Source of the DNA: Lepidodermella squamata
Taxonomy: Eukaryota; Animalia; Gastrotricha
Direction: 5' to 3'
Assembly (NCBI GenBank): GCA_047495785.1
Contig: JBLDXI010000036.1
Span: 434,001-498,000 of the forward strand
DNA length: 64,000 nucleotides
In this document: one piece after another, positions 30,713 to 61,418 of the stretch
Layout of the letters: the number at the start of each line of letters is the position of its first letter
Position numbering within the stretch: the stretch's first letter is position 1
Made by a program: the position numbers and the translations under genes
The notes under the pieces: generated by a model
Database searches by the model: none
What the model saw: the letters and a program-made list of their open reading frames with translations, nothing else
Told to the model about the DNA's origin: nothing

Positions 30713-30743
<31 letters not shown>

Positions 30744-30859
30744 TGGGCGCCAGCCGAGCCAATGACAGGAAAAGTGCTCATCGAGTAGACCGAACAAGCT
30801 CAGGTCATTAATTAATTTCCATTCTCTAAAAACACTTCCCACATATCATCCTCAAAGTA

Positions 30860-33580: not shown

Positions 33581-33754
33581 ACTTCTTCAATGTTGATGAA
33601 AAATTCGACCTGTTGCTAGTCAAGTGAGGAGGGCTGAAAGTCGATCAAAATGCTTCCATACACGTGGGGCGAATATCCACCGGAAATTGACTATGCCGCC
33701 GAACCTTCGACCCGCACTTTTTTCGATTTTAGTTGCAATTTATTACCGAATGCA

Positions 33755-34164
33755 AGTAGTTAGGAGGGGGAGGGGTGATTCCCCCTGGACCATGACCAAA
33801 GTGACGGTTAGGGTTAGGGTTAGGGTTAGGGGGAAGAATTGCCCCTCCGGGGATAGAAGTCAAATTTGAATTAACCCCCACGGTGTCTGGAGGGGTGGAA
33901 ATGTCCCGAAGGTGTCTGGAGGGATTGAATCGTCCCCACGGTGTCTAGCGGGATGAAAATGTTCCCGATGCGTCTAGCGGGGTTGATTTGCCCCAACTAT
34001 GTCTAGAGGGGCGGAAATGTCCTCACGGTGTCTGGTGGGGTTGAATCGCCCCAACAACGTCTGGAGGGTTCGGATCGCCCCACAAAATCTAGCGGGGTAA
34101 AATAAGTGTCATTGACCTGTAAAACAATACATTCCAAACCGTTTTATTTTACACCAAAACAAAA
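33755..34164. repeat. Maverick left terminal inverted repeat, containing (TTAGGG)4 and 8 x 29-bp subrepeats
   Basis: Reverse complement of 51572-51981 with only a few mismatches. Confidence 0.95.
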
Positions 34165-34203
34165 CAGGTTGAAACAGGTTGATAGATCATAAAACGATTT
34201 ATT

Positions 34204-35443
34204 TTAGGATTCAAAAAGTATGCGCAAGCTGTATACATATGGCGCGTAATTAGTAGTAGTAGAGTGATGACGATAAATCGAACGGTGCGTGCGCAATTTT
34301 CGGAAAAGAATTTTACGTGTGGAGGGATTGCAGCGTTCGAGTAGCAGTGAGATCAGTTGGGAGTTTTTACTAAACATCACAACATTGAAAATACTGCTGT
34401 GGTGTAGATCCACTGTTGCTGACCAGTAATCACGATACGCTAGATGTGGTCGCATGACCAAAAAACTCCGGAAACGTTGAATATCGTCAGGTGATATTGA
34501 CGCAGTATTCAGCATTTTGATGAGAGACGTAGCCTGTGATATGATAAAACGATAAGATGAAAACCCACTCAACAAGGTAAAACATACTGCAGCCATGTTA
34601 CGTTGGTAATGCGGCGTAATGATACGCAGATCCTTTGCGTCGGAGCCTTCGAAGAAAGTTTTCGGGAATCTTTCCTCGGGATACACACGAGTAATATCCC
34701 ACGGCATGACATAACATCCACCACGGGGGTAGTCGACTAAGCAGTTCCAATCAGTGTGATATTTCTGGAACATCATAAAATAATAGCAAATCAAAGCGAG
34801 TTGAAACATACCTCGACCGATTTGTAGTCATTATACCATTTGACTGGGGGTGGAATCAGGTAATTAAAATTCGAGTCCAATAGTGTTGAAGGCGGCCAGG
34901 TCTTACGGATTGGAGGTTTCAAAACGTCGAGCATCTGAAATATGAAAGGAAAAATGAAAACAACCGAGAGATATGAGTAAATCAACTTACTTCAGGACAA
35001 GAACTGCTAATGATGCGAACAATCCACCAAGGTCCACAAGTTATCAGATCATAGTCTTCGTAATTTTCAAGGCTGGTAACTTTTTTGATGAATTCCTCAC
35101 GCGTCATCTTTCCGACATCACGCACGTCGCCATGGTAAAAATGATATGCAGTCGATGCAACGAAATTCTCGCGGAAAAGTGGTTCAGACTTGAATGCCAA
35201 GGCGAAACGATGGATGGATGATCGATCTACTCGGCATCGAATTAATTCATAGCCTTTCGCTTCACCGAATTGTGCTTTGACCATTTCCTCCCAGCAAAAG
35301 CTGCTCGAGATAATTGTATGCCATTGATGGCACACCAACGTGCAGACTTTGAAAACTTCCTCAGTGTCTAGGTAGCTCAAAATTTGAGCCGCAAGTTCTG
35401 CGGTAAGCTCAAAATGTAAGAAATTCATAAACAATTTAGACAT
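34204..35443 (-). CDS. Maverick cargo: F-box protein, 3 exons
   Basis: N-terminal LTAELAAQILSYLDTEEVFKVCTLVCHQWHTII (F-box). Introns GAA|GTAAGT..TTTCAG and GAG|GTATGT..TTCCAG join ORFs 34982, 34791 and 34204. Confidence 0.75.
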
Positions 35444-35768
35444 TGTAACTTGGAATTGCTAGATCACTGAGCAAGGCTAAAGTAATACGGCTACTGCTCC
35501 TACCAAAATAAGTTTCCGGATACTCGGGACATGTGCCAACGCCCGCTGATCGCACTTTCTCATTAGTGAGCGGTGCGCTGTACTCATTAAGGGCTCATTA
35601 TTGTACCCGGTAGAAGGTGCTGGTTTACTCATACTCATTAACTGCGAACCAAGTTGATCCAAATAAACCAGTGTGATTTAATATTTATTTGAAACCAAAG
35701 CAAACGAGTGGTGCCACCACCACCACCGCCGCCAACACAGGTTAACAGAAATGTCTATGCGATGGTAA

Positions 35769-36806
35769 TTATTCATATATGATATTATCCCAGTCAAGGG
35801 CTGTTTCTACAACATTAGCAGGCGTTGTTAAAAATCCGAAAATTGGTCGTTCCGTTTCAGGCGCTTGCATATTCGCAGACTCGCCAACAGCGGTTAATGT
35901 GGGAGTAGCTGTCGACAAGTGTTCCTGTTGATTAGCTAATGCTTTACCAAACTTGGTTCGCTGTAGACCTGCAATAATTGGAAAAGATCCTTTTGCTACC
36001 ATGTCCAGAATGGGCTGGTACAGCATTTTAGCGCTCCGTGAGTAAGAACTCGGAGCAGTTGAGACAACTTCAACTAGAGTTTCAATAGGTATAGGAACCG
36101 CGGGTCTATCAGGAGCTCCCTGAAAGCTGATCGATTTACCGTCAGGATTGAGATTGTAAATTGAAGTTGACGGTTTTTCTCGTAAATGGTTAAGCAGGCC
36201 AGCAACTCTTGGTTTGACGTGACTGGGTAGGCGCGATAATTGCGATTTGAAGAACTTTTCCGCCGCCGTCGCTTGCCCAGATGGGTCAACTGAAGCTGTA
36301 CTGGGCTCAGTGGGACCTGAAGGTGCAGAAGCAGTTTCATGTCCTTGATAAGCGTCCCACTGCGGTTGAGCTTGCGCTGGTTGAGGACGGTTCGCAAACC
36401 TCATATAATTGTGTTTCAACTGCTCCAATTCAGTGAAAAATTCATTATACAATCGAACAGTTTGTGTGTTTGTCACAGGCTGCTCAAGCGTAGATGATAG
36501 CTTTGACTCCAGCTCCTCCAATTTATCGAAAAATGGGCCATCGTGAAACTTTTGCTTAGTCAAAGCTCGGCGCTGTAGCAAGTCACTCGCGGTCAAAGAA
36601 TCGTCGCAATGGCGTGAATTAGAAGCAGGAGGAGGAGGAGGAGGGTGCTGATTAAAACCAGAGTCCATCGACGAAGTTGAAGGTGAAGAAGAATCCTGCA
36701 TTAAGAGTAGTTTACGGCAATGTTTTGCAGGTTTAGCCGGGGTAATTGCTGAGGGAGACGTTGCTGGCGTTGAATACATTACTCGTAGATCAATGATCAC
36801 CACCAC
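35769..36806 (-). CDS. Maverick uncharacterised protein (345 aa)
   Basis: Long ORF directly downstream of the PW-like gene, with helical segments KLEELESKLSSTL..LYNEFF and LP..VKPRVAGLLNHL. Confidence 0.65.
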   Translation of the reverse strand: MVVIIDLRVMYSTPATSPSAITPAKPAKHCRKLLLMQDSSSPSTSSMDSGFNQHPPPPPPASNSRHCDDSLTASDLLQRRALTKQKFHDGPFFDKLEELESKLSSTLEQPVTNTQTVRLYNEFFTELEQLKHNYMRFANRPQPAQAQPQWDAYQGHETASAPSGPTEPSTASVDPSGQATAAEKFFKSQLSRLPSHVKPRVAGLLNHLREKPSTSIYNLNPDGKSISFQGAPDRPAVPIPIETLVEVVSTAPSSYSRSAKMLYQPILDMVAKGSFPIIAGLQRTKFGKALANQQEHLSTATPTLTAVGESANMQAPETERPIFGFLTTPANVVETALDWDNIIYE

Positions 36807-37194
36807 GAAGAGATAAAAGTCGCTCTACTATTGTAGGTAAAACACTTGCAGCGGCTGAAATTAGAAGAGGAATGAATGGACCAGAACCTTTTTGGATTAG
36901 ATAATTCCGGTTGGAATCAAGTGATTTGCTGCGAGAAAGTTTCGTTATGTCGCCTTTATATGCTCTGAGTCTACGTATGGTTTTTGGCTCGCCTGCCAAT
37001 TTCTTACGGAGCAGATTCAAGCAGATTTCCGACAGTAGAGCTACAACGCTAACTGGGGCTACCGCCAAAAGACGACGCCTCTGGCTCGGTGGTGATTGAG
37101 ATAGCAGCTTGAAATAGTCGATCGTTCGACTTTGTTTAGCCAATCGAATGTTAGCTAGACGTTTGTCAGGTTGAACCTTTTTATTTTTGACCAT
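36790..37194 (-). CDS. Maverick PW-like basic protein
   Basis: LSEICLNLL...LR.YK...LIQKGSGPFIPLL pattern, including a QxGxG adenain-type cleavage motif. Confidence 0.7.
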   Translation of the reverse strand: MVKNKKVQPDKRLANIRLAKQSRTIDYFKLLSQSPPSQRRRLLAVAPVSVVALLSEICLNLLRKKLAGEPKTIRRLRAYKGDITKLSRSKSLDSNRNYLIQKGSGPFIPLLISAAASVLPTIVERLLSLRGGDH

Positions 37195-37267
37195 TTAAGC
37201 AACAGAAAGCAAAATCAAGTAGTAGTAGCGCTAATACTAAGATTGTGCCAATGTTAATGTTTATGCC

Positions 37268-38141
37268 TTATATACTTATCGGTAGGTTAAGCGTAGGTAC
37301 ATCCTCAACTTTCACGAAAACGTGGCCGTTACGATTTCCAATGAAATCCCTGAAGCGTAAAAAAGGTGGGCACTCGGTTGTGTTGTCAATCACTAGATAT
37401 CCGTAAGGCCTGCTTGTTGCAATCTCGAAACTTTCTATAAAATATCATATGATAAATCATACGTTAATAAGTTCAAATGGTCTTTGATTTACCTTGGAGA
37501 AAACGCCAGTCCTTAGCCATCATTTGTCTAGCTAGATGGCTGAACTGTGTCATATCGCATGGAGATCGAAATACCACAATATATCGAGCATTTAGCGCCA
37601 AATCTCGCGAGAATTTACCTCTAAGGAATTAATGAAATAATTAGAAGATCATAATTTGGAATCAAGATTTGGGAAGCAACTTGGGAAAAAGGTTGTTCTG
37701 CGTCATAATTACTGAAATTCGACTGTGATGAGACCCTCGATAGAACAGTTCGGCAACCGCTTTCAGATCTCGAGCATCGGCATAATTGTCATCGAAAATT
37801 ATCAGTGTATGGTTGAATCGATGTCCTAGCATGTAATCAGCTTCATGAAATGAAGCGATGTCACCTCGAAACTCGATTGGAATTCCCCGAACAGCTAGCA
37901 ATTGCCTACTCAAATCCTGATGGCTTGGCTGAGCAATTCCGCGATACCATACACAACGATCAATAGGTTTATCGAAAGATTCAGGATAAAGCAGGATGTC
38001 AGTCAGTAATGTTGACTTGCCTGCGTGGCTCGGTCCTGTACTTGGAAATGAATTGAAACAAAAATGTTGTCTAATGATGTCTTTAAAACCTGAAACAATA
38101 ATTGTGCAAGGTGACTTGAAAGCCGTCGAAAAGCATACCAT
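37268..38141 (-). CDS. Maverick genome-packaging ATPase (A32/FtsK-like), 4 exons
   Basis: Spliced: TIIVSG|PSHAGKST (Walker A), LIIFDD (Walker B), SHHSRISVIMTQNNLFPK|GKFSRDLALNARYIVVF...LARQ...FLQ|ESFEIATSRPYGYLVID. Confidence 0.93.
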
Positions 38142-38218
38142 TTCAGAAATTTTAGGCTAATCGGTTAATTTATGAGCTCAACGAAGTTATTTACATATTA
38201 CTATTTTATTATTGCTAC

Positions 38219-38728
38219 CTATCTCTTGACTCTTGAAGTTTCGAAGCATTGTAATACAAAGCGATCTACGAAGTTATCGTTATCTTCCCTTGTATTGCGC
38301 CCAAAATTGGTGACAAGCGACACTATTCTTGGAATCGAATAACTTCGAGCAGATAAATATAGAAAAACCAGGCTGTATTTGCCGCAAACATCGCTGTCCA
38401 TCGACTGCAGTGCTGTGTAGTTGAATGATTGAAACTTGCGGCCGCAGTTAACCATATTTTCCAGAAAATGATCAATGTGAACAGAATAGTTTGCCGGCTG
38501 CATGCCATAAGAATCCATGAATTTAACGTAGTCGGAATTGGCGTGAAGGGCTATCCAATGCGTTCCTGGCGATGAGCTGGGTGAGGCGTTAGCTATCAGA
38601 TACAACGGCCTCTCACTAACATCCCAGTTTTCGTAAAGTGGTAAATGATTGCATGGAATCGTCGCATACGTACCGAGAGATATTACCGGATCGGAACCGA
38701 GAAGCGAATTCAACTCCAAAGTGTTCAT
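38219..38728 (-). CDS. Adenain-like cysteine maturation protease
   Basis: PGTHWIA (His), FMDSYG (Asp), LQSMDSDVCGKY (Gln/Cys). Confidence 0.93.
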   Translation of the reverse strand: MNTLELNSLLGSDPVISLGTYATIPCNHLPLYENWDVSERPLYLIANASPSSSPGTHWIALHANSDYVKFMDSYGMQPANYSVHIDHFLENMVNCGRKFQSFNYTALQSMDSDVCGKYSLVFLYLSARSYSIPRIVSLVTNFGRNTREDNDNFVDRFVLQCFETSRVKR

Positions 38729-38738
38729 GAATAGTAAT

Positions 38739-40089
38739 TTAGAAGAAATTGTGAATTATCGTTCGGTTCGATTGAATTTCCAAAACTTTGTTTTTATACT
38801 CCATCAAGCAAATCAGCGTTGATGCTTCGGGTATTTTCTCGCTGAAGACAAGATTCATCTGCATTTGACCTGTCTGAATCAGCTTTCCGTTCGGGTCGCT
38901 GTCCAAACTCGTATCGAACCCAAGGATTGTTCCGCCATCACTAATGAACTGCTCTCGACTGATTTTAACACATTTCGAATTAGAGTGGGGAAAGATTGTA
39001 TCTTGCATCAACTGATAGATTCTGGAAACGTCGTTCGTTTTGAAGTTCATTGCCATTGGAGTGGACGAAATCGGCTTCCCATCAACCGTTATTGTAATTG
39101 AGCTCAAATTGTGATGCATGAAATTGAAGGGGTTCTTCTTTCCAACCCCCTGCAAAGTGTCGTCCGCAATTATGCCTGTAAGATTAAGAAAGAAAACGAA
39201 TGTACGATTCCAGTCAACTGCTTAAGAACCTACACATGATCAGTTTTGAGGGTAAAACTCCCAGAACGAGATTGTTCAGATGGATCGAAGTTACATTCAT
39301 AGGCAGGTTGAATGGTTTCGCCACAATATGATTGAAGGAATATTTAGCCGGAGCGACTTGCAATGCCCGCTCAAGGCCGATTACAACCTCGGGAGCTACT
39401 TCGACACGTCTCACGAGTAGAACACATTCAAGAATTGTGAAGTCGTATTTTGCGACATCATCACTCATGAGAAAGAATTCCTTCTTGTTTTGAGTTAATT
39501 TCAAACGAATAGGCACGTTTGGGATCAACCATTTTTCCTGGTTGAAAAAGTCAGTCTGAAGACGGCCGCATAGACTAATGACAGGGTTTTTGCTTGCGGT
39601 CTTCACCAGGTTTAGACGCTTTTTGAACCCTTCATTAGCAGTCAAGCTGTTCATTTGCCCGAAAGTATCCAAATACCAACCCGAGTTGGTCAACTTCGAG
39701 CTTTGAACATCTTCACTAGCCGATAGTAAGGTTTGAAGATAGCTCGAATAGGCATGAAGACTGGTGTTTTGAGTTATCAGAGTTTCTGAAACCCAGATAT
39801 GCACGTCCTGCCAAAGACTATTCAGCAAATTGTTGACAGGGGCGCAGTTGAAAAGGACATCGGTGACATTCTCGTCATCTGTCGTAATGCTAGCTCTAAT
39901 AGACAGGTAGCAGCGACTGAGATCGGTGTAGTGCTCACTTGGTGGAACTTGAAAAGTGATCTGCTGCCCCGATGTGATAGCCGATGTTGGGAAAACCTCA
40001 GTGAAATGGGTTCCGAGAACTTCTCGAGTGATCGGAGGTAACGCGAAGCTGGCTAGCTCTGCACGAATAGCATGAGTTTCTTCACTCAT
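38739..40089 (-). CDS. Major capsid protein (PY, double jelly-roll), 2 exons
   Basis: [45 protein letters not shown] motifs; intron 39176-39233. Confidence 0.92.
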
Positions 40090-40096
40090 CTCTGTA

Positions 40097-40181
40097 CTGG
40101 TTGGTTGGTTGGTTGGTTGGTGGGTGGGTTGGTTGGTTGGTTGGTTGGTGGGTGGGTTGGTTGGTTGGTTGGTTGGTTGGT
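40097..40181. repeat. (TGGT)n microsatellite immediately upstream of the MCP start codon
   Basis: About 21 tandem TGGT units with two TGGG interruptions. Confidence 0.9.
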
Positions 40182-40278
40182 AAGTGAGAACTAGAAACTA
40201 CGATTTTCCAAAGTTTTATTATTATAGTCTGATTTTCTAATCTTTACATAGTAGAAGTAGTAGTAGTAGTAGACTAAT

Positions 40279-40740
40279 TTAGAACAAGATGCGAGCATCA
40301 TTTCCAGTCTTCACTCGCTTTGATGGCATTATCATCGACAAAGTTCGTTTCGAATTTTTAGCTTTGTTCCGACGACGCTTTCGCGAACCCTGACCGTACT
40401 GATTGGCAATGTGACTGACCGCCTGTTTCCCAATACTAGATAGTCCTTCACTACCTCGGTTTTTAATGATTTCTCCAAGCTTGAGCTCGTTGCCTGATTG
40501 TTGGCGATCAGCAACATCTGAGGCAATGTTAGCAGTAGTAACAGCAGCAGTTCGTAATAGATTAGGTAAAAAAGGTAGAAGAGTCGAGCGAAAGAATGAA
40601 CGCAAAAACGAGCCCAGCCCATTCCCGCGCATGACCACAACAGATGGTCCAGTGAAGGGTTGGATTGATGAAGATCCGCCTCGACCGGTTTGCGAGAGAA
40701 ACCATGAATAATACTCATCACTTGAGATTGGAACACGCAT
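40279..40740 (-). CDS. Maverick PM-like / core protein with protease sites and an amphipathic helix
   Basis: QTGRG, MRGNGLGSFLRSFFRS..LP, QYGQG, followed by a basic RKRRR tail. Confidence 0.75.
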   Translation of the reverse strand: MRVPISSDEYYSWFLSQTGRGGSSSIQPFTGPSVVVMRGNGLGSFLRSFFRSTLLPFLPNLLRTAAVTTANIASDVADRQQSGNELKLGEIIKNRGSEGLSSIGKQAVSHIANQYGQGSRKRRRNKAKNSKRTLSMIMPSKRVKTGNDARILF

Positions 40741-40757
40741 ACTCTTGATGGTTTATT

Positions 40758-41906
40758 TTAACCCTGACGGATAGGTCTTACATGTAGAATAGCCAAAGAT
40801 TTGTTCGAGCCTGTGAATTTCACTTTAGACCCATCATCTTTACATAGTAAAATTGTAATGCAATCGAGAATCTGACTACGAATAGTATGGTAGTAAGGCA
40901 TCGATTGAGCAAAGTTCGTCACAGAAAACTGCTTCCGCGCATTGTCTCCAGTGCCAATAGGGAAAACCCTCAGTAATTCAACAGATTTGTCTCCTACGAT
41001 CGTCGGCTCAATTATATCGGTGTATGCGTAAATCAGAGGTGTGTGAAACCAAAGTTGGTGCGGAAAATCCGCCAGCAGTGGGTCTTTAACAGCTCTGTAT
41101 TGAATATCCGCAACCATCTTAGCGCTTCCATCTGAAGCTTTTTGGTACAGCGTCAGCGTTAAAATTCCACTCTCATCCTCGCTAAAGGTCCGTTTCGGAC
41201 CATGCATCGTCGTTATTCGCTTACCAGAGTCCTTCCCAGCCAAGATGAATTTTAAGACATGCGAAAACAAGGATAATTGTTCACGCTCATGCTTGACGCG
41301 TATCTCTTCTGCCTCTTCCGGTGTTTCCACAGCTGTAACATCCTCATGAGGTGGGACGTTGATTAAAAGCGTACCCTTTTCAAAGCCGAGAATTTGAGCC
41401 AAGAATTTTGGCAAGTAGATGCCATAGCCAACTTGTGGACAAAGTTCGATGCGGCTTTTCCGTTCGATAGGATACATAGTTATCATGAAGCCATCGGGTA
41501 TCGCGCTGTTCATGTCATCAATGAGCTCAGCAATTGAAGTGTAAACGCGATTGCCAACTACACACTCCCTGAATACATCAGGCTTGTCGAAAGGGGGTGT
41601 AATTAATCCATCCTCAGCCAAGTAGCTCGTTTTAAACACGTAAAATGATGTCTTCTCGACAGTAATCATCTCAGCAGGGTGAGTTATTTCTACCAGGGCG
41701 ACTTCATGCGAATTCATGAATCCTAAATCTGATTACCATGAAGATTATAACAGAAACTTTTCAGAATTTATTTGAAATTTACCTATTGGATGTGGCAGCT
41801 TGATTTTGAACTCGGCCGCATTATTGTTGGGATACAGAGATTCGCAAGCATGGCTCGGGAGATGGATAAAGAATTCGCGTCTGAAATAGCTACTGTGATG
41901 ACTCAT
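40758..41906 (-). CDS. Minor capsid protein (penton, PX), 2 exons
   Basis: Exon 1 FFIHLPS...YPNNNAAEFKIKLPHPI, intron 41729-41782, then EVALVEI ... IYAYTDIIEPTIVGD..LLRVFP ... LHVRP. Confidence 0.88.
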
Positions 41907-42294
41907 TGAAAACAGGATCAAAGCTGATGTCTGTTGACTTCAGGTGGCAAAAGGGCAAGTTTTCAGTCGACGCTGCAGCTACTGCTGTTGTTGTTAATTT
42001 CGGTGATTGTGTCCACAGAAGCGGCAGGTATACTAACACCGAGGATAACAAGAGCAAAATCAAGCTAAGGACCAGTACAGTAATTTTCTTTGAGCGGTCT
42101 GAAAGCTGTGAAAAAACGGCACTAGGACTGGGCGAAACCTGCGGTGCTCGTAGATTGTTCGTAAAGTATTGACGAATTTGTTGAAATGTTAATTGGTGTG
42201 ATTCATTCGAACGTGACGAAGCGTTACGTCGTAGATTGCCCGAAATTTCAGGGTTGGAACTTGACTGCATTATTGAAGTAGCCTTTATATGCAA
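41890..42294 (-). CDS. Small single-pass membrane protein of unknown function
   Basis: Hydrophobic stretch ITVLVLSLILLLLSSVLVYLPLLW; lies between the integrase and penton genes. Confidence 0.5.
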   Translation of the reverse strand: MHIKATSIMQSSSNPEISGNLRRNASSRSNESHQLTFQQIRQYFTNNLRAPQVSPSPSAVFSQLSDRSKKITVLVLSLILLLLSSVLVYLPLLWTQSPKLTTTAVAAASTENLPFCHLKSTDISFDPVFNESSQ

Positions 42295-42345
42295 CAGTGT
42301 CGGTAGATTTCAAGGTGGCAGCAAGGCATCTCCCTTTACATAGTT

Positions 42346-43464
42346 TCAAACGTGTTGCAGCTCATAATCGTAGAGGACACGTTTTAATTCCTTGGCTCTC
42401 GTATTCAGCTCAGGTGAGACACGGTAAGCCACAGTGGAGTGATCGTTCGCCGGTAGGACATTGGTCACGAAATAATAATCCTCACTAAACGTAGGATCTT
42501 TGACTCGATTTCGAAATGTTTTTCGCACCTCCTTGATACGAACTCGATCACCAACTCTGAAGTTGACTCGAACTTTACGCAGTTTCTTATTGACTTTGAA
42601 CACGTTTCGAAAGGCTGAGTAGTTATCCACATGCTCCTCGTAGACATTCATGACTCCTGGTTGACTGAGATCTTCATTTATCACTGGATCATGCCTCCAC
42701 AGTTGGCTTGGAGACATTCCAGTCGTTTTGTTCACGCAGTGGTTAATTGAATCGACAAAGTCCTGCAACTTGTCAACGAACCGTTTTGTGTCGTTTGCCA
42801 TCATGTACCTCACGATCCGAGACCTCAAATTGAAAATAAAGGTCTCAATACTTCCGACCTTCTTCGTGGACTCGGAAAGATAAATGCTGGATCCAATCTG
42901 CTTCAAATAAGCCTTAACTTTAAAGTCCTTGAATTCAGATCCTGCGAATTAATTATCCAATGGTCTTAACAGTAGCTATATAATCACAAATGAGTCACCT
43001 TTATCGGTCAGCACCTGTGACGGAACTATGCCTGCATCAGTGACAATCTCTTTGAGAGCCTCCAATACTACCGCTCCGGTCTTGTTTTTGCATGCACGTG
43101 CCCATGAGTAGCGCGTAAACAAGTCCTTTATCACAAGCACATACTTTTTCTTGAAATTGTGCCACTGAAAAGGTTTCGTCAGCTCCAACAAGTCGGCGGC
43201 AAAACACGATCCTTTGGCAAAGATCGCTACTCTGCGATAAAGCTTCCTGTTGCGAGTTGACGCTTGTCGAAACCTAGAATATGCCGGTTGTTGGCTGAGC
43301 CAATGTTTAACCGATTTAAGCGTGATTAGTTTGTTGCCTAGGGCCCGCTTTTTCGCAGCAGCGTACACTGCTTGCACACCTCGGAAACTACTAGATAAAC
43401 TAGGACTGTAATATAACGGATGAAGTATGTCATCGAGATCGGTGAATTCAACTTCATTTAGCAT
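42346..43464 (-). CDS. Maverick retroviral-like (rve) integrase, 2 exons
   Basis: YY.P, V..WL..Q.AY, AADL (D), KYVLVIKDLFTRY.W, TDKG|SEF (D), IETF (E), FRVGDRVRI, YDYELQ; intron 42942-42998. Confidence 0.93.
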
Positions 43465-43566
43465 GATTGAAAAGTTTTATTCGAAAGCAATGTCAGAAGT
43501 TTCTATTTATGCATTTTAGAATCAGAATTATCATGTCCCCAAGCAAAAGAAAATCATTAAAGAAGT

Positions 43567-46500
43567 TCAGTAGCCAAAAGGTTTCGTTTTGTAACTTTCA
43601 GTGTCTGTTATAACTCGTTTGTGATATTTGAATGATAGGTTTTTCATAACCTCCATTATCATCACTCGGGCGTAATCGGTGTGGTATCGACGCCACAGAG
43701 TTTGCTGCAGTTGAATTGAATCACCTTCATTCGCAACCTTCATAAGATTGAGCAGCTTATCGAAGTCAACCTTATTCTTGACAGCCTGGTTCTGGGTGAA
43801 ACCTTTCAGTTTCATGCTCAAGTTACCCTTATTAGTAACATACGAGTACGTCTTCGGGGCAAGCGCTAAAAATCTTGTAGACCACAATGTGCAAACGGTT
43901 GATTAAAACATTTGTTTGCAAATAGAAATCTACCTTTCAATGTGTTCTCCTTCCGATAGTTCATTCGACCAACTACCTAGATAGCTGCCTCGGTTCAATG
44001 GTTCAGGCCCATCTGGTTTCGAAATGTAGATGCAGCTGTCGGTGTCGCAATACAATGCAACACCTTGTAGATGCCGTAGCTGCTCAAAGAGAATCAATCG
44101 AGCTTCAGCGGTAATCATTGCAGCTGTGACGATATTTGCACATGGAATTGTGGGTTGGAACTCAAGCTTCTTCGCATGACCAATGCGCATTTTTTCACCA
44201 GTTGGGCACCCATCATATTCGTCAGCTAGCTCAGGCTTCAACCCATCAGAGTCATCCTCACGGTGAAAAACAGTCAGATCTTGAACGATGCAACCAGGTT
44301 GATTGAGGATTTTGACTAGTTCCATGGGTGAGTCAACGTAGGTGTAGTCGACGGAGTCGGATCGAAGTCCCAACTTGCCATAAGCTATAGTTACGTATCA
44401 GTCAAATCTAATCCATCACTACACTCCAAGCTAAAACTTACCACTGTTGAGAATCAGTTTTCCGATTTGTCTCATTGCAGCATTCGGTCGACTCAGCTTG
44501 ACCCGATTAAGCTCAATGCCATAGAGCTTACGACAGTTGTTGACATAGTCCTCAACTTCTGATTCATTGCAACCGCTGGCCTCCAGTTTGATCTTTTGAG
44601 ATAAAGATAAAAGATGAAATTTCATGAACGGCAAAATGCTAACGTATTTACTTTTAGCATTGCATAAATGAATGATCGGAAGAGGTTCGACGTTTTGCTG
44701 TTGTAGTGATATGACTCTAACATACCGTCAACAATTAGAAGACGAATATCGCACATGTCTCAAGAAATTTACCGTAAAACCTGAGAACTTGATACATTTC
44801 CAACTCAAGTCCACGTCGTAGTTCTGAAGTTGAGACAAACACATTGAATGCCCGCTCTTCGTCAGCATGCTGACATTGCTCCTGGCATTCTTCCTCGGCA
44901 CATGTACGGCATAGCGTAAACAAAAGGCGACCCTTGGCTGTTCGGTATGGAATGCATGGTAGGTAGAATCCTGCAAGTTGATTGAACGATTGATTATATA
45001 TTTTGCAAATTTGGAGAATTTGAACCTCGATTGGGCAGTAGTAGAACATGCACCATTCCAAAGGTCGGATTTTCAGCATTGAAAAAGTGATGCCGGAGTT
45101 TCAAGTCATCGTTGCGCCAGTCCAATACCTTGTGATCGACTGGGCCAACAGGGAAGAAGATTTCTTTGAAGCCATTTGAATCTGAACCTAATACGACAGG
45201 ATTTGACATATTTGCTCAAGTAGTTCTAATCCTACCAATCCTTCCACTGAGCACTGATGGGTATAGGGATACAACATCGATGTATTTGATGGTTTCACCT
45301 GGCTGAGCTTGGTGATGCAGTTGGAACACCTACGCAAACTAGAACACTTAACTTTTTTGTTTTCGAGGAGGTCGAGTATCACCTCTGTCCGGCCACCAAA
45401 GTATCCCATTCGAGGATTCACAGCGCTGACAACATTGACACACCTTTCGATGTACTCCACAATTCGCACATCGGCTTCTTCGAGCATCTTCTTCGCCTGA
45501 CATCCCCAGATGGAAATTACCTTGTAGCCGGAGTTGATGATGGCCTGCTCACGCTTGATAGTTTCATCGTACAGTTTGTGGAACGGTAGGCGCCTTGTTG
45601 GTTGTATTTGCTTCGGATCGTAGCAAGTTGGGCAGCCATGGATGTAGTCACCATAATATTCCCAGAGAGTAATCACACCGGTGGTTTCATCAACAGACCA
45701 ACCATCAGGTCTCGCAAATCGTAACCCATTACCATTTTCAAGGTAGAAAGTTTTTTCGCCATTCGAGTTTCCCGCATGCTTGATGTCGATGCCAAGGGTA
45801 GTGGCCATGTAATCCAACCAGATAACAGATTCTCGTGAGCACCTCGCACTGGTATTAGGTTTCATTAGCCAATTTCTTAAATTCTAACAACCTGACCAAA
45901 ACTCACTTTGACCCATAGCCCATAGGAGGAACCAGATGCATGGGTGTTGACGGGTCCAAGTATAGAAAGCGTAATATCAAACTTGCAAGAGCAGCCAATG
46001 TGCGACATTCTGAACACTCAGATCAGGGTAAATGAAGATATTCACAAGTTTCAGGACTCACCCAACAGAGGATCGATTCCAAGTGGGGCTTTGACAGGAT
46101 CGATTGTGATCTCCTTGATCGTTTCCCGGAATTTCAGAATTCCGAATCGGAGAACATCAACATCAGCGATGCAGTAACTAGTCGCTGTGGCTTTTAGATT
46201 GAAAACTGCATCATGGTTAGCAGCGATATGCTCCTTCAATTTTTCGAGTTTGACCGGCGACATATTGCTCGTGTCGTAGCTTTCGATAGTTGGCCACGCG
46301 GTGTCAGTAGAATTCTCCCAGTTTTCAGGTGTAAGAAGTAGATAGGGAAAAAATTCTTTCACGATGCCCTGGGGAAGATCAAAACACTGTGGCAACTTTT
46401 CCAGCGATGTGTAAGTGAACAGGTATAAATCTCGGAACAGAATAGCCGAATTTTCAACGTTCAACTCCATCAGAGAACTACCGTGCTGAATTTGGGTGAA

Positions 46501-48734
46501 ATTCAAGTCACTAGTTTGCAGGAATCTGTTTAAATTGTTCAATTTCAAATTTTATGATAAAGGCTGCTGTTGTTCAAGACTAGTTACCGTAGAATGAAGA
46601 AATGATCGAATCTGTAAATTATCATTTTATCACTATCATCGTTTTACTCGGCGGATTAAATCTGATCTCACCTTGCACCGTTTTGACTGATCAAGATTAT
46701 TCCAGGGTGTATTCGTAGAACATAGCGTACAAACGTCCCAATAGCGGTTGAATCGGCCGATTGTGACGCGAACACAAGCTGTCTCCGAGCACCACATTTG
46801 GCTGGACATGGAACATTCATTGGCGACTCGCAGCAAGAGTCACAGAAGACTTGCAGTACCACGAGTACGGGAATCAGCTCACCGTTGGACGAGCGGCGCA
46901 CAGATTCAACGTCCCATGCGCCAAACTTGACGGTTTTACCAGGCTTTACCACTTTCAACTTGGGGATTTGTAGTTTGCAATCGTGCTCGTTTTTCTCACC
47001 GTAGGGTGGAAGCTCTTCGCTACACGTTGGGCATGTTCTTGGTTTACCTAGGTATATCCGCTATACAAGGGTTGGGTTTTGCTTTCAACTTACAATTATG
47101 CTTTGGTTTGTAACTTTGAGTTATCACCCGAGCACACCGGTTACAAAAGTAACGCGTCTGGCAAATCGACCGTCGTTGGTTGTCTCTTACGTTCGGTTTA
47201 AGATGCTGTTCGAAGCATTCTCGATTGTAATACGAGTTGTTGCAGGGGCCAGTGCAAAGGATCGGCTTTTCACGTCTCTCCTTGCAGTTCATTGTTGCAG
47301 AGTGGCATCTGTCGCATCGATTCACACACTTGTGTCGGATCAAATCCTTCGTCATGAACCAGCATGATCCGCAAATACTCTTCCTACCAGATATTTCACC
47401 TGTGCAACCTAGGTTTCGGACTGGATGACGATGTATCGATAGAGTGAGACGGTTACTTACTTTTCAAAGCGTGGTAGTGCGACAAGCTTGTGGCTGCAGG
47501 CCCACGGTTTTGATGAAGTCTGTTGTTTGCGTAGCCAATGTATATTCGCTTCTCACCATCGACTTGGGGACCTTCAGGGTAGACGGTTGTGATCCGACGA
47601 GTTGCGAAATTGTATATTATTCCTAAGTTTAAAAGATGTGCACTTTTCCTTCATTCAGCCACTCACTCCTTCGCTCACCTCTATACCCATGTCCAAATGA
47701 GTCAATCAATTGTTTGAAATGTGAAACTCCGTAGGCAGGAAGGTTAAGCGGGATTCCTGCTATGTTCATCTGCTCAACAGCCAGATCTCCCAAATTACTG
47801 TAGCAACGACTAGCCGGTTGGTTGATAGCCCACAATTGTTGCTTGAGCCTTCCAAACTCTCGTTTCGCTTGAGCCCTCTCATCAGCATCGGAAATGTTTC
47901 TGCATGCTATTGAAGCCAATTTTGAATCGCGGTAAGCCTTCGATAGCATGGTTGCCCTTATTAAGCAGTAGTTGTCTGTAGTATTAACAATTCGCATGAC
48001 TTCGTTGCAACTAGTAATGGAATCGAACGCAGTCATTTCCAAACGCAGACGTTTGAACTCAGGTTTCGGTCCACCACCTTCACATTCAGCTTCAGCTTCG
48101 ATTTCTGTAACTTTCACTCGAAAGATGTTGAAAAACCATCCTATTTTAAAATTAAAATCACGCCAATATTTGATGTTTGGCACTAGGTAAGATGTACCCA
48201 TATTCATAGATGGAGATATTTTCGATTGTAGAACACGTTCTGCCGTTTTCATGATGAACATTCCGGTGAGTTCAGCCACACGCACGTACGGGGTCAAGAT
48301 GGGCGTTACCAGGTCGTCGTGGATACACTCCACTCTGACTACATCTCTATAGGTTTTGATAGGTTCAATGAAGAGACTATTAGAAATTATAACACAATTT
48401 ACCGTGCAGGAAATTGTCGCTTTACTGTTTGCGCAATTGACTCGAAGAAAAGATGAATCGAAACCAGTAGCGTCAGAATGTCATCGGTCGTAACCCAGTT
48501 GAATCCCAAATCTTCCGTGTTGGGACTGAGCTCTCCAGCACCTAGTTGCATTAGAGGCAATGTTGCGCCTTGTGCATATTTATGGACATCCATGCGGTAC
48601 AAAGGGCTGTACTCATGAAAGCCTAGATGTATTAAACTCGATAACTCTTGAGACATTATTTGAAAAATGTGATAAATCCCCATCTTTTTGCACAGCTTAA
48701 ATACAACACTTTTAATTGGATCGTGAGAACTCAT
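43567..48734 (-). CDS. pPolB: Protein-primed family B DNA polymerase with terminal-protein region, OTU-like and Vsr-like domains; more than 12 exons
   Basis: Spliced motifs: ERVLQS (TP region), DNYCLIRA...HYH (OTU Cys/His), Cys-rich fingers, WDVES (ExoI), NGAR|FD (ExoII), YCIADVDVL (ExoIII), PDGW..WEYYG..HGC (Vsr-like), GGRTE, DVVSLYP, KLILNS|AYGK, YCDTDS, PKTY, KGF, PFGY. Exact start codon uncertain (48656 or 48734). Confidence 0.93.
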
Positions 48735-48852
48735 TATTTTATTTCAGACGCCTGGCACATCATGTCTGCCCCGCTAGACAAAAACTTTCAGACAAAACAA
48801 AAACACATGCAATTATTCTGCATGAGAGTTGATCGAATTCAATTAGTAAGAT

Positions 48853-49335
48853 CTACGGGGATGTTGGGTTGTAAATTGGGCTTGCAGATCCTGCAGCTAC
48901 AACCTCGCCATTTGTTTGTTCTCCAGATGGTAGCGACGATGGCGGCGGCGGCGGCGGTGATGTAGGTGCGTATGTAGGGGATGGTGGCATCGCATCGCGC
49001 TCGGCTTCTTCTTCTTCTTCTTCATCATCATCGTCATCATTAGCAGTGTCTTCTTGCCAATTGATGGCCGCCGTTATTTCGTCGGCGAGCTCCGACTCGT
49101 CTTCGGATGATCCTAAGCTGATCACTTCATCCGATAGCCGGCGCCTAGCAGTAATTCGAGGTAACAGCCAGTTCGACTCAACTCGCTTGGCGATCGACTC
49201 AGATGTCTGAGTACCAATTGAACAGGACTTGATGAAGAGATGGTCAGCTGGGCGCGAAATTGTTGATGATCTTCGATGAGTGATGACATGGCTTTCGTCC
49301 TCCGATTTTTCAATAGTAATCATTGCACGCTTCAT
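48853..49335 (-). CDS. Acidic low-complexity protein with a SIM-like motif and two Pol II CTD-like heptads
   Basis: EVISLGSSEDES, a poly-D/E tract, SPT-YAPTSPP and SPI-YNPTSP at the C-terminus. Confidence 0.6.
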   Translation of the reverse strand: MKRAMITIEKSEDESHVITHRRSSTISRPADHLFIKSCSIGTQTSESIAKRVESNWLLPRITARRRLSDEVISLGSSEDESELADEITAAINWQEDTANDDDDDEEEEEEAERDAMPPSPTYAPTSPPPPPPSSLPSGEQTNGEVVAAGSASPIYNPTSP

Positions 49336-49387
49336 GATAGCTGGTCGACTTTTGTGCTAATAATAATATAGCTGCTGATAAAACTGT

Positions 49388-49981
49388 TCAGACTACTAGG
49401 CAGTAATTTGCAATGGCAGTCAAAAAGTCTTGAATGTGAGTCGTTAGGTTGCTCATATCTTCGCCACCACCGCAGCCAGTCAAGCATATTCGCCCTGTAT
49501 GAAACAGGTTTACACATATTCTAGTACCGAACACATGTTTGCACCGCATCGCAGGAAACCTTGTCAGATCTAATTTCACTTGTTCGCAGATTGTGGTAAT
49601 TTCCGACGCGAGACAGGGCCCTAATTGGGGTTTAAAAGGCAATTTACCAGTAAGCGCGCGATTAACCACTCGGTAGTTCGTGAAAGTAATTCGTGCGTCT
49701 AGTTTTCGCTGCATTCGTCTTGCCAGTTGCCTTGCTACGGTTTTAGATTCCGTAAATTTGACATTCTCTCCAGGCGGTCTCGTCATTAGTAAGACGGTTT
49801 TTCCATTGCCAAAAACCAGTGCGGTATATTTCACTGGTTTAAATTGTTTGATAATAACAGCGTTCGGGAACGATTTCTTGATTTCACAAAATTTGAACTG
49901 CTTCATTACTTTACGGAGAGGTAAACGAACATTCAAGTTAAAAACTGAGACAATATTTCTGATATATAATTCAACTTCCAT
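49388..49981 (-). CDS. TBP-like: Divergent TATA-binding protein (TBP)-like protein, intronless, encoded by the Maverick
   Basis: Two TBP repeats: RNIVSVFNL..L.L...KSFPNAVII...P..TALVFGNGKTV...ARQLARRMQ...F.NYRVVN...F...TRFPAM...RICVNLFHTGRICLTG, aligning with TBP QNIV..KRFAAVI..TALIFSSGKMV..ELFPGL..LLIFVSGKVVLTG. Confidence 0.85.
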   Translation of the reverse strand: MEVELYIRNIVSVFNLNVRLPLRKVMKQFKFCEIKKSFPNAVIIKQFKPVKYTALVFGNGKTVLLMTRPPGENVKFTESKTVARQLARRMQRKLDARITFTNYRVVNRALTGKLPFKPQLGPCLASEITTICEQVKLDLTRFPAMRCKHVFGTRICVNLFHTGRICLTGCGGGEDMSNLTTHIQDFLTAIANYCLVV

Positions 49982-50185
49982 TTAAAAAAAAAACTGAGCA
50001 ACTGACACATTTCAACGTTTCACCATTTATTTAATTATTTCGCAAAAAAAATCCAAAAGCATTCTAATTTCTGCTGAAGCCTATGCATGCATGCATGCTT
50101 GGTTTTTCCCTATAAGTAAAGTAATGTGATTTTCATTGTGTAAGTCTCTCGCTGTTTTCTTGCGATTCATTTCAGTTTGCTGCAT

Positions 50186-50920
50186 CTACTTCGACTCCAG
50201 GGCTTGTTGAACCGGGTTTGCCAGAATACTGTATATCATAGCTTGCAGCTCCAGGAACACACCCTCTGGAATACAGAAGCCATCTGGGGTGAATTCAGCT
50301 TTCTCTTCCGATCTTTTGTTAAGAATTCGTACATCAACGTACGCACGCGGCGATCCGTCTGGGCGAAACACACGAGCATGTAATAGTCCGATAATTACGT
50401 ACCTCGGTCCGTTACGAGCTCCGTTACGAGTCTTGAGGTCGCGCTTGACTTTATCGACCCAGCCGTGAGATCCTTCAACTTGCATAGTTTCATAGAGCAT
50501 TCGTAGCTCCTTAGCCGATAGCCAGAGACCCTTGCGGAGGTAGTAAAGTTTGTTTGCTTCAATGGCATGCCCGATGTAGAATTCAAGATCGGGTAGGTAC
50601 TCGTTCAACTGCCGGCGCAGAATAACAAACGAGTGATCTTTGTGACTCGTAACCGTCTGCAGTGAAACAACATACTGAGCTCGGTGGAATCTACAGATTT
50701 CATCGAAAGGTGAAGACCCATCGCCCCAGACTCGATCAACGTATCCTTGAGGTGGTAGCAATGGCCCGTCGGTATGTACCATTTCACTTGCTGCTTTCAT
50801 CAATATCTCATCAGATAGTTCGAACGCAACAGCTTTCAGCAAGTTTGCATCATTCGATGGTGACGACGGGGGCGCAACATGGTCGGCTTCCTGTACTGCT
50901 TGACTGCTAGAGCTTGCCAT
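50186..50920 (-). CDS. Putative tandem PC4-like ssDNA-binding / coactivator protein
   Basis: FVILRR...LRKGLWLSAKELRML and AYVDVRIL...FTPDGFCIPEGVFLEL both resemble the PC4 motif YVDIR...PxKKGISLxxEQWxxL. Confidence 0.55.
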   Translation of the reverse strand: MASSSSQAVQEADHVAPPSSPSNDANLLKAVAFELSDEILMKAASEMVHTDGPLLPPQGYVDRVWGDGSSPFDEICRFHRAQYVVSLQTVTSHKDHSFVILRRQLNEYLPDLEFYIGHAIEANKLYYLRKGLWLSAKELRMLYETMQVEGSHGWVDKVKRDLKTRNGARNGPRYVIIGLLHARVFRPDGSPRAYVDVRILNKRSEEKAEFTPDGFCIPEGVFLELQAMIYSILANPVQQALESK

Positions 50921-51571
50921 TGTAACTAGATTGATCCTGATAGCTGCGAGTATAAAAACAAAACTTTTTAGTATCTATAAGCCGAACTTAGGCGCTTATA
51001 TACACGTCCAATTTGATGATCCAGGCATCGTCGCCGCCGCCGCCGCCGCCATTTTGCTAGTTCCCACCGTCTACCCCGATGTCTGCAATGTGTTCTTGAG
51101 ACATGATCGGTAGGCTTGATAGACATATATCTCGTAACCAACCTAATTGGCGCTGAATAAATAGGTAGACAAAATCAAAGTCAGAGCACAATTACTTTTT
51201 ATTTTTCAAAGCTTATTTGCTTTCCAACTCGATCTGTTTACTTTTCAACACTAAAAATGAATAAGGAAGACCTTACCGCCATGTGAGTGCTTTTGTGATA
51301 GAGCCCAGGTAGTCAGTTTGACCATACATACTTTATTTTCTACTACAGTGAAAGCAGGTTAAATGAACTGAGTTTTCGGTTACATTTCATCAAACATTTG
51401 ATACCTCAACTATCATCGCATACAGCACGATTCCTTGAAGACGCCGAGGAGGTCATCTTCCGACTACGTTTCGGATTGCTGTTGGCGTCAGAGCAGATAG
51501 CTAACCCGTCACCCCTCAATACGAAGCCCTGGGCTCAATTCTTTAAATGAACTACTTAATATTAACTTTGA

Positions 51572-51981
51572 TTTTGCTTTGGTGTGAAATAAAACGGTTT
51601 GGAATGTATCGTTATACAGGTCAATGACACTTATTTTACCCCGCTAGATTTTGTGGGGCGATCCGAACCCTCCAGACGTTGTTGGGGCGATTCAACCCCA
51701 CCAGACACCGTGAGGACATTTCCGCCCCTCTAGACATAGTTGGGGCAAATCAACCCCGCTAGACGCATCGGGAACATTTTCATCCCGCTAGACACCGTGG
51801 GGACGATTCAATCCCAACAGACACCTTCGGGACATTTCCACCCCTCCAGACACCGTGGGGGTTAATTCAAATTTGACTTCTATCCCCGGAGGGGCAATTC
51901 TTCCCCCTAACCCTAACCCTAACCCTAACCGTCACTTTGGTCATGGTCCAGGGGGAATCACCCCTCCCCCTCCTAACTACT
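51572..51981. repeat. Maverick right terminal inverted repeat
   Basis: Inverted copy of 33755-34164, ending ACTACT and followed by the TSD AATGCA. Confidence 0.95.
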
Positions 51982-52596
51982 AATGCACATGCCTTCCTTC
52001 ATCAAGTCGAATCCGAAAACAACAGATATATGGAAATAAATGCAATATCTACCAGTTGCAACCATAAAATTTACACTTTGAACAGACAGCAGCTAGAGAA
52101 CTCAGCATTACGAGATGTTATTCTTTCATTTCGAGCAGGCATGGAAACACTTTTGTGATCGGCCAAACTGGACAGAAAATTTTGAGTCCGCTGTTTCGTC
52201 AATATTATAAGGGTTTGGGTCGCATTTCAGTGAGAAATAATCAAAATATGCGTTCGCTTCGCACACATTTACCGGCCCACATAAATCCCAACCAAGATAA
52301 AAATTTAAAACTTGCGGGTTTGCCGCGATTATTTCACCTCTATTTTTCAATTTATTATTTAAATTTGTTTTTTCTTGAAATTATAATATATATCCGAAAT
52401 TAATTTTTAAAATTAAGCACGTGTTTTCAAGTTGTTTGAAGTTTTCTAGTTTTTGTGGTATCTCGGGTGCGCGGCGTGCAGGGTTTATGTAAGTTCACAA
52501 AGGAAGCCACTGGCTTCCTTTGTGAACCAGGCAATGAACCAGGCCGCACACCAGGGCCAATGAGACTTTCGGGACATCAACCAATGTCATTTCCTC

Positions 52597-59692: not shown

Positions 59693-61418
59693 ACATTAAT
59701 TAGAGCAAACTTTTTTTTCAATTTTTTTTAAATTTAAATTTTTTAATTTTCAAGCTGAATGATTGATTCATGCTAAAATTGAATGCATGCTAATGCGCTG
59801 AATAAATTTTTAACGCGGACTTTTTATTTCAATTTTTACGCTATTTTCACAAGGGTATGACCCTTTAGCACCCCAAAACGTTGTTTCAGATAGAGCGCAT
59901 GTATGAATAGCAGTATTCCCTTAATTATTGTTGATTTTAGCGAAGATCCTGCCGAATCACCTTTCCGAATAATAAAGGTGAAAATCACGAATAAAATTAG
60001 CATTGGGCGTGTTAAGACCCCTCAATTTTTGCGTATCCAGACCTCTCATTAGCGTTTCGAAACGTCTTAGTCATTTTTTTCGCAACTTGCGGGTATAGAC
60101 GTTGAGATTCTGAAGATTGAATACCGCATTTGTGTTAACAGCAGTGTGCGAAGTAGGATTTTCGAGCTGGTGTGTTCCTAATATTGAGCAACACAAAAAT
60201 TGCACTCGCTCGCTTCGCTCGCTCGCAAAATCAGTAAGATTTACTCAGCATGGGGGACAATTAGCTATGATTTTAACCCATGAAACGAGCGAAGCGAGAA
60301 ATTTTTTCCATTTTTTCGGTAAAAAGGGGTTCCAAACCCTCCTAGCATGTGTTAGTTTTATTTTGTGTCAAACCCTCCTAAAATTGACTATTTACAGTCG
60401 TCCGTTTTCTTCCCATTGTCACATTGTTATTTGGCTCAAATAAGGGCTCTTTACTTACGCCACGTCTCAAATTCTCGAAACTAAGAAAAAAAATATAAAA
60501 TTTGCAGTTTTTGGAAACATAATCGAAAAGCTGGCTAGCGGATGGTCGACCTGCACTGCCCAGCCTAGCACCTACGCCGCAATGTCGCCCCTCACAGGCG
60601 CAAAACAAGAGAATCACAGATTTCTTGTTCCAGAGCCTGAGCCTGAGCCTGAGCCTGGCATCCAACACCGGATTCTTGAGCCTGAGCCCTGAGCCTTTGA
60701 GCCTTTAGCGATATGAAGAGCGTGGTGTGATATGGGTGATTATGCATCATAAGCCGTTTTCATATGAGTTAATCCCTGCCTTCGATCTTTTCAGAAAATC
60801 CGCCTTGAGCCCTAGCCACAATAGCCCTGAAATGAGCCTTTCATCATGCCCGTCACAGCCGCGAAGGTCGACCAACGAATCAACAATTTTCTACTTTTCT
60901 ATTCAAACCAAAATTGAAAAAAACCGGCAAACAAAAAAAATTATATACATAAACAATAATAACTATACAAACTCATATAATCGTGATTCATGCGTGTTCG
61001 ACTAGAGCCCTGATTAGCATGGGGGCGAGTTATTTCTGTAATCTCTCTAACACATGTGCCAATTGCGTCGAAAGGCGGAGGGCCTATAATAATAAAACTA
61101 CAACATGCTAAATAAACACGTTCTGTCGTTTTTATCATTCTGTTTAGACACTTTCGTAAGAAGTTTCCAAAATGATAAGAAATATTTTTATACTTTTCCG
61201 TCATTTTATTCATAATCTCACAATCAGGTGCATTTTGTTATATCATTCATCACTAAAAATTAAAAAAAAAACAACTTGGGGTACTACGTTGAATGCAAGA
61301 TAAGTAACTCCTTGCAAGAAGATAAAAATAGTTAATACACCATTTCCTCCTGTTCTTGATTCCATTACTAGTTACTGTGAATATTTCACCTAACCTTTTC
61401 AATACTTTCTGTAAAGTA

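Follow-up and report, generated by a model that had tools for sequence, protein, structure and literature searches.

A predicted, very divergent TATA-binding protein encoded among three accessory genes of a Maverick element in the gastrotrich Lepidodermella squamata

The DNA analyzed here is a 64,000-nucleotide (nt) stretch of the genome of the gastrotrich Lepidodermella squamata (GenBank assembly GCA_047495785.1, contig JBLDXI010000036.1, positions 434,001 to 498,000 of the forward strand), hereafter called the window, to which all coordinates refer. It harbors an 18,227-bp Maverick/Polinton-type element (33755..51981, minus strand), delimited by a pair of terminal inverted repeats (TIRs), a target-site duplication (TSD), the terminal motifs, Pfam matches to a protein-primed DNA polymerase B (pPolB) and an rve integrase, and the strand of its open reading frames (ORFs). 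Inside the right TIR, the leading accessory arm of the element carries three uninterrupted, co-oriented ORFs on the minus strand, namely, ORF-A (50186..50920; 244 amino acids [aa]), ORF-B (49388..49981; 197 aa), and ORF-C (48853..49335; 160 aa). An initial annotation of this DNA had described the trio as co-oriented, without obvious introns, and standing at the head of a single transcription direction, and these points hold; between 28 and 56 kb there are 22 ORFs of 130 aa or more, and every one of them lies on the minus strand. It had also placed the trio between the right TIR and pPolB; this order is right, but ORF-C is not directly adjacent to the pPolB signal, as one or two small ORFs intervene. 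A tblastn search for a further copy of the trio within the window came back negative, and searches of PHROGs with ORF-A, ORF-B, and ORF-C gave no matches. The same annotation had interpreted the three genes as a transcription-initiation cassette made up of a PC4-like protein, a TATA-binding protein (TBP), and a mimic of the RNA polymerase II (Pol II) C-terminal domain (CTD). Our analysis points to a real TBP in an unproven cassette, and we regard the three-gene transcription kit as a lead.

The central gene of the trio, ORF-B, codes for a protein with an isoelectric point (pI) of 10.0 and, as judged from sequence comparisons, is a true two-repeat TBP, albeit a very divergent, core-only version. 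It matches the Pfam family PF00352 in two stretches with a score of 50 bits (cutoff, 22.9; E 2.6e-13). Further, a phmmer search of the PDB retrieved some 30 TBP sequences from eukaryotes that align over query residues 7-176 with E values of 3e-7 to 4e-5, and the archaeal TBPs recovered in the same search had E values of 4e-3 to 3e-2. In alignment to solved TBPs, these residues (49454..49963, minus strand) represent the TBP core with both repeats. Thus, the identification of the 197-aa ORF as a TBP homologue is upheld by both the Pfam match and the PDB alignments. Like cellular TBPs, ORF-B has two tandem repeats, and it aligns over the whole core of the yeast, human, plant, fungal, and microsporidian proteins. 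Cellular TBP cores are very alike among themselves; the identity of ORF-B to yeast TBP, counted on the printed alignment, is about 27%. It differs from the cellular versions also in having no N-terminal extension and in possessing insertions after the last strand of the first repeat. The possibility of a recent capture of a host gene was considered and rejected, as no eukaryotic TBP is appreciably closer to ORF-B than the others are.

The functional residues of ORF-B were mapped on a pairwise alignment to yeast TBP (1tbp_A), for which we take the yeast numbering to be the chain index plus 60. Of the four positions that we take to be minor-groove contacts, Asn69, Asn159, and Thr215 are identical in ORF-B, whereas Thr124 falls at an insertion and is ambiguous. 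Among the phenylalanines presumably responsible for kinking the DNA, Phe116, Phe190, and Phe207 are identical, and Phe99 is represented by a Phe shifted by one residue. ORF-B accordingly shares with cellular TBPs most of the minor-groove contacts and, of the four phenylalanines that kink the DNA, three to four. On the other hand, the triad Glu186, Glu188, and Leu189, to which we ascribe contact with TFIIB, aligns to Asp, Thr, and Arg, beside a 4-residue gap. This apparent change, a further difference from cellular TBPs, bears on whether the protein functions in the manner of a host TBP and not on its membership in the family. Also unlike the cellular proteins, ORF-B belongs to a virus-like mobile element and has a Cys-rich second repeat, with six cysteines and two histidines in about 48 residues (residues 123-170). 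A sub-threshold RING/U-box-like Pfam match (E 0.09) falls in the same repeat; if a metal site were present there, it would be unusual for a TBP repeat.

ORF-A, the first gene of the trio, is a near-orphan whose conserved part comprises residues 89-232. An exhaustive HMMER search with ORF-A against 1.84 billion representative proteins recovered a single relative (E 3.3e-6), a 174-aa protein, P0001, a singleton that has no name, comes from a Logan contig of 1,956 bp, and in which no Pfam domain was found. A word-indexed search with the family alignment of the two proteins returned P0001 again and nothing else. Within the part that the two proteins share, each half contains one instance of a [KND]-G-[LF]-[WC]-[LIF] motif with a helix-like stretch after it, and P0001 conserves both instances. 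The initial annotation had ascribed two PC4-like motifs to ORF-A; the likeness to PC4/Sub1 (PF02229) is one of pattern only, namely, two stretches in which a short strand-like Gly-hydrophobic motif stands before a helix-like segment, and it was not confirmed. The two short related motifs and their retention in the sole relative stand, but the PC4 link is absent in every sequence and profile test. No PC4 match was obtained from Pfam at E values up to 10, either with the whole protein or with four sub-ranges including the two halves, and neither ORF-A nor the ORF-A/P0001 family profile matched any PDB sequence; PC4 was never a named match in these searches or in that with the family profile. The halves themselves show no similarity to each other in BLASTP, and their comparison with hhalign is marginal (P ~0.05; probability ~1%). 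Hence, at the level of sequence, nothing ties the two motifs of ORF-A to PC4, and the proposed likeness is unsupported. A nucleic-acid-binding role for the protein would be a guess.

ORF-C codes for an acidic protein (pI 4.4) that is assigned to no family and ends in a low-complexity Pro/Ser-rich tail. Residues 71-82 (49090..49125), in which a hydrophobic core leads into a Ser/acidic stretch, are SUMO-interaction-motif-like by pattern only, and residues 100-110 (49006..49038) form an 11-residue run of Asp and Glu. Two CTD-like units of the form SP-x-Y-x-PTSP follow, the first at residues 119-127 (48955..48981) and the second at residues 152-160 (48856..48882), which constitute the C terminus (all features on the minus strand). 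The units are isolated elements of 9 residues each, 24 residues apart, and do not form a tandem heptad array; a six-frame search found no such unit elsewhere in the window. Their co-occurrence does not appear to be an accident of composition, as none of 200,000 composition-preserving shuffles of ORF-C produced two copies of the Y.PTSP core. For comparison, the CTD of mammalian RPB1 consists of 52 tandem heptad repeats, and we used the heptad consensus of this repeat (PMC11092357). Each unit of ORF-C agrees with it at 5 of 7 positions (1, 3, 4, 5, and 6), with Ala or Asn at position 2, and is preceded by a partial Ser-Pro-x.

The two units are identical at 7 of 9 residues, whereas 10 of their 27 bases are not the same; five of these differences are synonymous, with Ser encoded by TCC in one unit and by AGC in the other. 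The codon differences therefore favor constraint on the peptide and disfavor a recent duplication of the DNA. Of the earlier description of ORF-C as an acidic, CTD-like protein, the acidity and the two nonrandom units are borne out, but tandem heptads are not found, and the likeness to the CTD is, as far as the sequence goes, one of two short linear motifs only. ORF-C also invites comparison with the regulatory "Oncoid" genes of adintoviruses, which are typically located upstream of PolB (Starrett et al. 2021), a position matched by that of the trio. Like an Oncoid, ORF-C is small and acidic, contains short linear motifs, and has its gene upstream of PolB; unlike one, it has neither an LXCXE motif nor paired CXXC motifs, and its CK2-type sites are not enriched (5 found versus 6.9 expected). 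An identification of ORF-C as an LXCXE-type Oncoid was rejected on account of the absence of LXCXE.

With respect to regulatory signals, a TATATAAG box at 50995..51002 (minus strand), 82 nt upstream of the ATG of ORF-A, is a candidate core promoter, although on its own it is not statistically special. A second TATATAAG (37267..37274, minus strand), also in the sense orientation, precedes an ATG at 37194 by 80 nt, almost the spacing seen at ORF-A, and may mark another transcription unit. In the window as a whole, this octamer occurs 4 times versus 1.6 times expected, which is not significant (11 of 100 shuffles reach 4), and the two TATATAAG regions, when aligned, have 9 bases in common. The TATTATTA directly upstream of ORF-C is common throughout the window and has no significance. 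Candidate poly(A) signals of the AATAAA type (both on the minus strand) occur 155 nt after the stop codon of ORF-A (50026..50031) and 110 nt after that of ORF-C (48738..48743), and across the element AATAAA is biased to the sense strand (13 sense versus 4 antisense). No AATAAA occurs between ORF-B and ORF-C. This distribution of signals therefore suggests two transcription units, one probably comprising ORF-A alone and the other ORF-B with ORF-C.

The element that hosts the trio agrees with the Maverick/Polinton type in its 410-nt TIRs, its 6-bp TSD, its AGT-repeat termini, and its pPolB and integrase signals. The left TIR (33755..34164; 410 nt) starts with AGTAGT, and the right TIR (51572..51981; 410 nt), which is 99% complementary to the left one, ends with ACTACT on the plus strand; AGTAGT...ACTACT is the commonest terminal motif among vertebrate Mavericks (Barreat and Katzourakis, PMC8097293). 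The AATGCA duplication is perfect at both ends of the element (33749..33754 and 51982..51987). Because the TIRs are 99% identical and the TSD is intact, the insertion is apparently recent, and we consider this Maverick to be apparently young. Each TIR additionally contains a perfect telomere-type run, (TTAGGG)4.3, about 50 nt from the tip of the element (33806-33831 and 51905-51930), and about 6 to 8 head-to-tail units of 29 nt (33875-34098 and 51639-51866), which can alternatively be read as 58-nt dimers. These units are G+C rich, evenly spaced, and 60 to 77% alike, and by look they resemble an array of protein-binding sites.

The protein-primed PolB signal (Pfam DNA_pol_B_2, PF03175; E 4.7e-8; ORF near 46 kb) falls in a minus-strand region with approximate outer bounds of 43500..48333, and the rve integrase signal (PF00665; E 1e-7) falls in a second such region (42346..43464, outer bounds likewise approximate). 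The pPolB homology sits in ORFs far below the length of a full polymerase, and the match to the integrase core domain extends past the end of its own ORF; therefore, each of these genes is broken at least once, by introns or by damage. In the accessory arm opposite to that of the trio, a 153-aa ORF (34982..35443, minus strand) gives an F-box-like match (E 7e-8), and on this basis its product would be a candidate for hijacking the SCF ubiquitin ligases of the host. Together with a weak P-loop hint, pPolB, the integrase, and the F-box protein are the Pfam families recognized in the element. Of the standard Maverick gene set invoked by the initial annotation, pPolB and the integrase are thus recovered by Pfam, but the capsid proteins, packaging ATPase, and adenain-type protease are not recognized by Pfam or PHROGs even at relaxed thresholds, save for the P-loop hint.

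Several further observations concern the element and its surroundings. A 225-aa ORF in the polymerase region (45188-45865, minus strand) matches phrog_22677 (E 1.6e-5), a PHROG family without known function, and a (TGGT)21 microsatellite lies between two ORFs of the element (40098-40181). About 2 kb to the left of the element, nested inverted repeats (29213-31693) with arms of 107, 75, and 55 nt that are 88 to 95% complementary probably represent another transposon. Long ORFs on either side of the element (32294-33058, minus strand, and 61356-61940, plus strand) match Cys-loop ligand-gated ion-channel domains of Pfam weakly and below threshold, and the element may sit inside a cluster of Cys-loop receptor genes. 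Such receptor exons in the flanks fit an animal host. Rfam and tRNA scans gave no matches.

The initial annotation held that the TBPs encoded by viruses come for the most part from large DNA viruses, and the literature consulted bears this out (PMC4893493, PMC7700475). TBP-like general transcription factors are found in some phycodnavirids and Mesomimivirinae (PMC7700475). Such giant viruses are comparable to the present element in encoding TBP homologues but are far larger, and many have RNA polymerase subunits of their own (PMC7700475), whereas the element studied here is an 18-kb integrating one in which no RNA polymerase subunit was detected. A different precedent is provided by the beta- and gammaherpesviruses, whose viral pre-initiation complex (vPIC) is built around a protein that is about 10% identical to TBP and reads TATT boxes (PMC4893493). 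The herpesvirus TBP-type proteins are large, were recognized by their fold, act at late promoters, and depend on five other factors of the virus (PMC4893493). Set beside ORF-B by description, the vPIC likewise belongs to a nuclear DNA virus that lacks an RNA polymerase of its own and encodes a promoter-binding protein of the TBP type. The differences are that ORF-B is a plain, sequence-level TBP and that neither TATT nor any other private box is enriched in the element. Further, ORF24 of KSHV (Kaposi's sarcoma-associated herpesvirus) binds the Pol II CTD directly (PMC13345323); in the element, in contrast, it is a separate small protein, ORF-C, that would imitate the CTD.

Among mid-size viruses, a "TBP" label appears, beside "Fbox," "TRAF," and "UCH," in the legends of figures on MELD viruses from non-animal eukaryote datasets (Starrett et al. 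2021, Figs 5-6); the body of that paper does not take it up, and the virus that carries it is not specified. The MELD viruses with an adintovirus-like PolB resemble our element in that they have mid-size linear double-stranded DNA (dsDNA) genomes with host-type TBP and F-box genes, both of which the element possesses, but they come from non-animal datasets, and the likeness is by gene label alone. A full-text search of the literature for TBP or TATA in connection with Mavericks, Polintons, or adintoviruses returned nothing beyond this label, and transcription factors are not discussed in the papers on vertebrate Mavericks (PMC8097293) and adintoviruses (Starrett et al. 2021).

Taking these observations together, the reading that we prefer, with a probability of roughly 0.45 and hence somewhat short of even odds, is that the locus is the leading accessory arm of an apparently young Maverick and that its three genes are real, although an assignment is possible only for the central one, the TBP. 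We judge the genes to be real because of the strict strand bias of the ORFs and because ORF-A has a relative at an E value of 3.3e-6. As the residues that grip and kink the DNA are kept, ORF-B most likely binds TATA-type DNA; its homology and the retention of these residues are seen directly, and the binding is what we infer from them. The protein is probably not a simple duplicate of the host TBP, because its TFIIB-facing surface appears to be changed. It would either nucleate initiation on the DNA of the element with other partners or occupy TATA boxes without completing the host complex. The units of ORF-C resemble the Ser5-centered part of the Pol II CTD repeat, and this protein is most likely a hub of short linear motifs that engages host factors that read or modify that repeat. 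The positions of the AATAAA signals are consistent with a transcript shared by ORF-B and ORF-C, and ORF-A is a lineage-restricted protein that has a TATATAAG box and an AATAAA signal to itself. A single complex of the three proteins is possible, with adjacency as the only pointer to it.

Several results weigh against this reading. In word-indexed searches of 5.8 billion protein clusters, neither ORF-A, searched by itself, nor ORF-B had a close relative. The AlphaFold models of ORF-A (from a two-sequence alignment; mean predicted local distance difference test [pLDDT] score, 35.6) and of ORF-B (from a single sequence; mean pLDDT, 34) are unusable; the fold assignment of ORF-B accordingly rests on its sequence. 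The change in the TFIIB triad of ORF-B is uncertain, as it is read from one pairwise alignment with a 4-residue gap alongside. The units of ORF-C lack Ser at heptad position 2, and a PDB search with ORF-C gave no match to RPB1. The codon argument for ORF-C is also the sole sign of selection across the trio. Finally, a canonical TATATAAG could be served by the host TBP, no upstream k-mer is common to the ORFs of the element above background, and the element shows no enrichment of TATA-type boxes. By these measures, the sequence of the element has no sign of a private promoter code.

Of the alternatives, the full cassette of the initial annotation is one that we consider unlikely. In this scheme, ORF-A would be a PC4-type single-stranded DNA-binding coactivator that joins the TBP and the CTD mimic in an element-specific pre-initiation complex, recruiting host Pol II in the style of the herpesvirus vPIC. 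It draws on the confirmed TBP, on the adjacency and common orientation of the trio at the head of the element, and on the apparent peptide constraint on the two CTD-like units; in addition, an altered TFIIB surface on ORF-B would fit a need for private partners, and there is the precedent of a virus whose promoter binder resembles TBP and which also makes direct use of the Pol II CTD. However, PC4 was undetected by Pfam (E up to 10), PDB sequences, and the family profile, the motif halves of ORF-A are only marginally alike (P ~0.05), two isolated CTD-like units compare poorly with a mammalian CTD of 52 tandem repeats, and no private promoter motif was found.

A role as a decoy or in host shut-off is, in our estimate, likewise improbable. 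Here, ORF-B would sit on TATA boxes without recruiting TFIIB, while ORF-C would titrate CTD-binding factors, so that host Pol II is dampened or redirected and the genes of the element are not driven. A resident element would profit little from damage to its host cell, and the reading of the triad on which this idea leans hangs on one pairwise alignment beside a gap. Nevertheless, the retention of the DNA contacts while the TFIIB triad aligns to Asp, Thr, and Arg is what such a decoy might show, and the lack of enrichment of TATA boxes in the upstream regions of the element, as well as the absence of a Ser2 position from ORF-C, by which only part of the CTD code would be mimicked, is consistent with it.

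It could also be that the accessory arm holds passenger genes, that is, acquired or newly generated sequences without a role for the element, with the CTD-like units as low-complexity noise; we give this explanation a low probability. The presence of a single copy of the trio in the window, the lack of close relatives in very large databases, and the variability of Maverick accessory regions (PMC8097293) all accord with it. Yet the identity of ORF-B to each of the cellular TBPs is about 27%, which speaks against its recent capture, and nevertheless it has an intact ORF and keeps its contact residues. The relative of ORF-A has both motifs, the units of ORF-C keep their residues across synonymous differences, and plausible TATA and poly(A) signals accompany the ORFs, all of which speak against this explanation.

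Poorer still are the prospects of a fully private initiation system, in which a TBP with a rebuilt TFIIB face, a presenter of Ser5-type CTD-like units to the host capping or kinase machinery, and a lineage-specific cofactor would together render transcription independent of the host TFIID. Last, host transcription factors stimulate the use of the adenovirus origin, and by analogy a DNA-bending ORF-B with a possible single-strand binder, ORF-A, could act at the terminal repeats in protein-primed replication, but, despite the position of the trio immediately upstream of the polymerase region and the roughly 6 to 8 ordered 29-nt TIR units that look like protein-binding arrays, we hold this to be very unlikely, given that the kept TBP residues suit an A/T-rich minor groove whereas the 29-nt units are G+C rich and that no signal of a single-strand-binding protein or PC4 is detectable in ORF-A.

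Mavericks are widespread in animal genomes, and to our knowledge the control of their own expression is essentially unknown. Giant viruses take over promoter recognition, and herpesviruses do so in a disguised way; if an 18-kb element that depends on host Pol II has a TBP recognizable by sequence, such takeover would extend to near the small end of the dsDNA viruses. The manner in which ORF-B has diverged, with the DNA contacts kept and the TFIIB surface apparently changed, is relevant to the evolution of TBP itself. For the biology of Mavericks, one gene and one candidate TATA box would provide a handle on when and where such elements are expressed.

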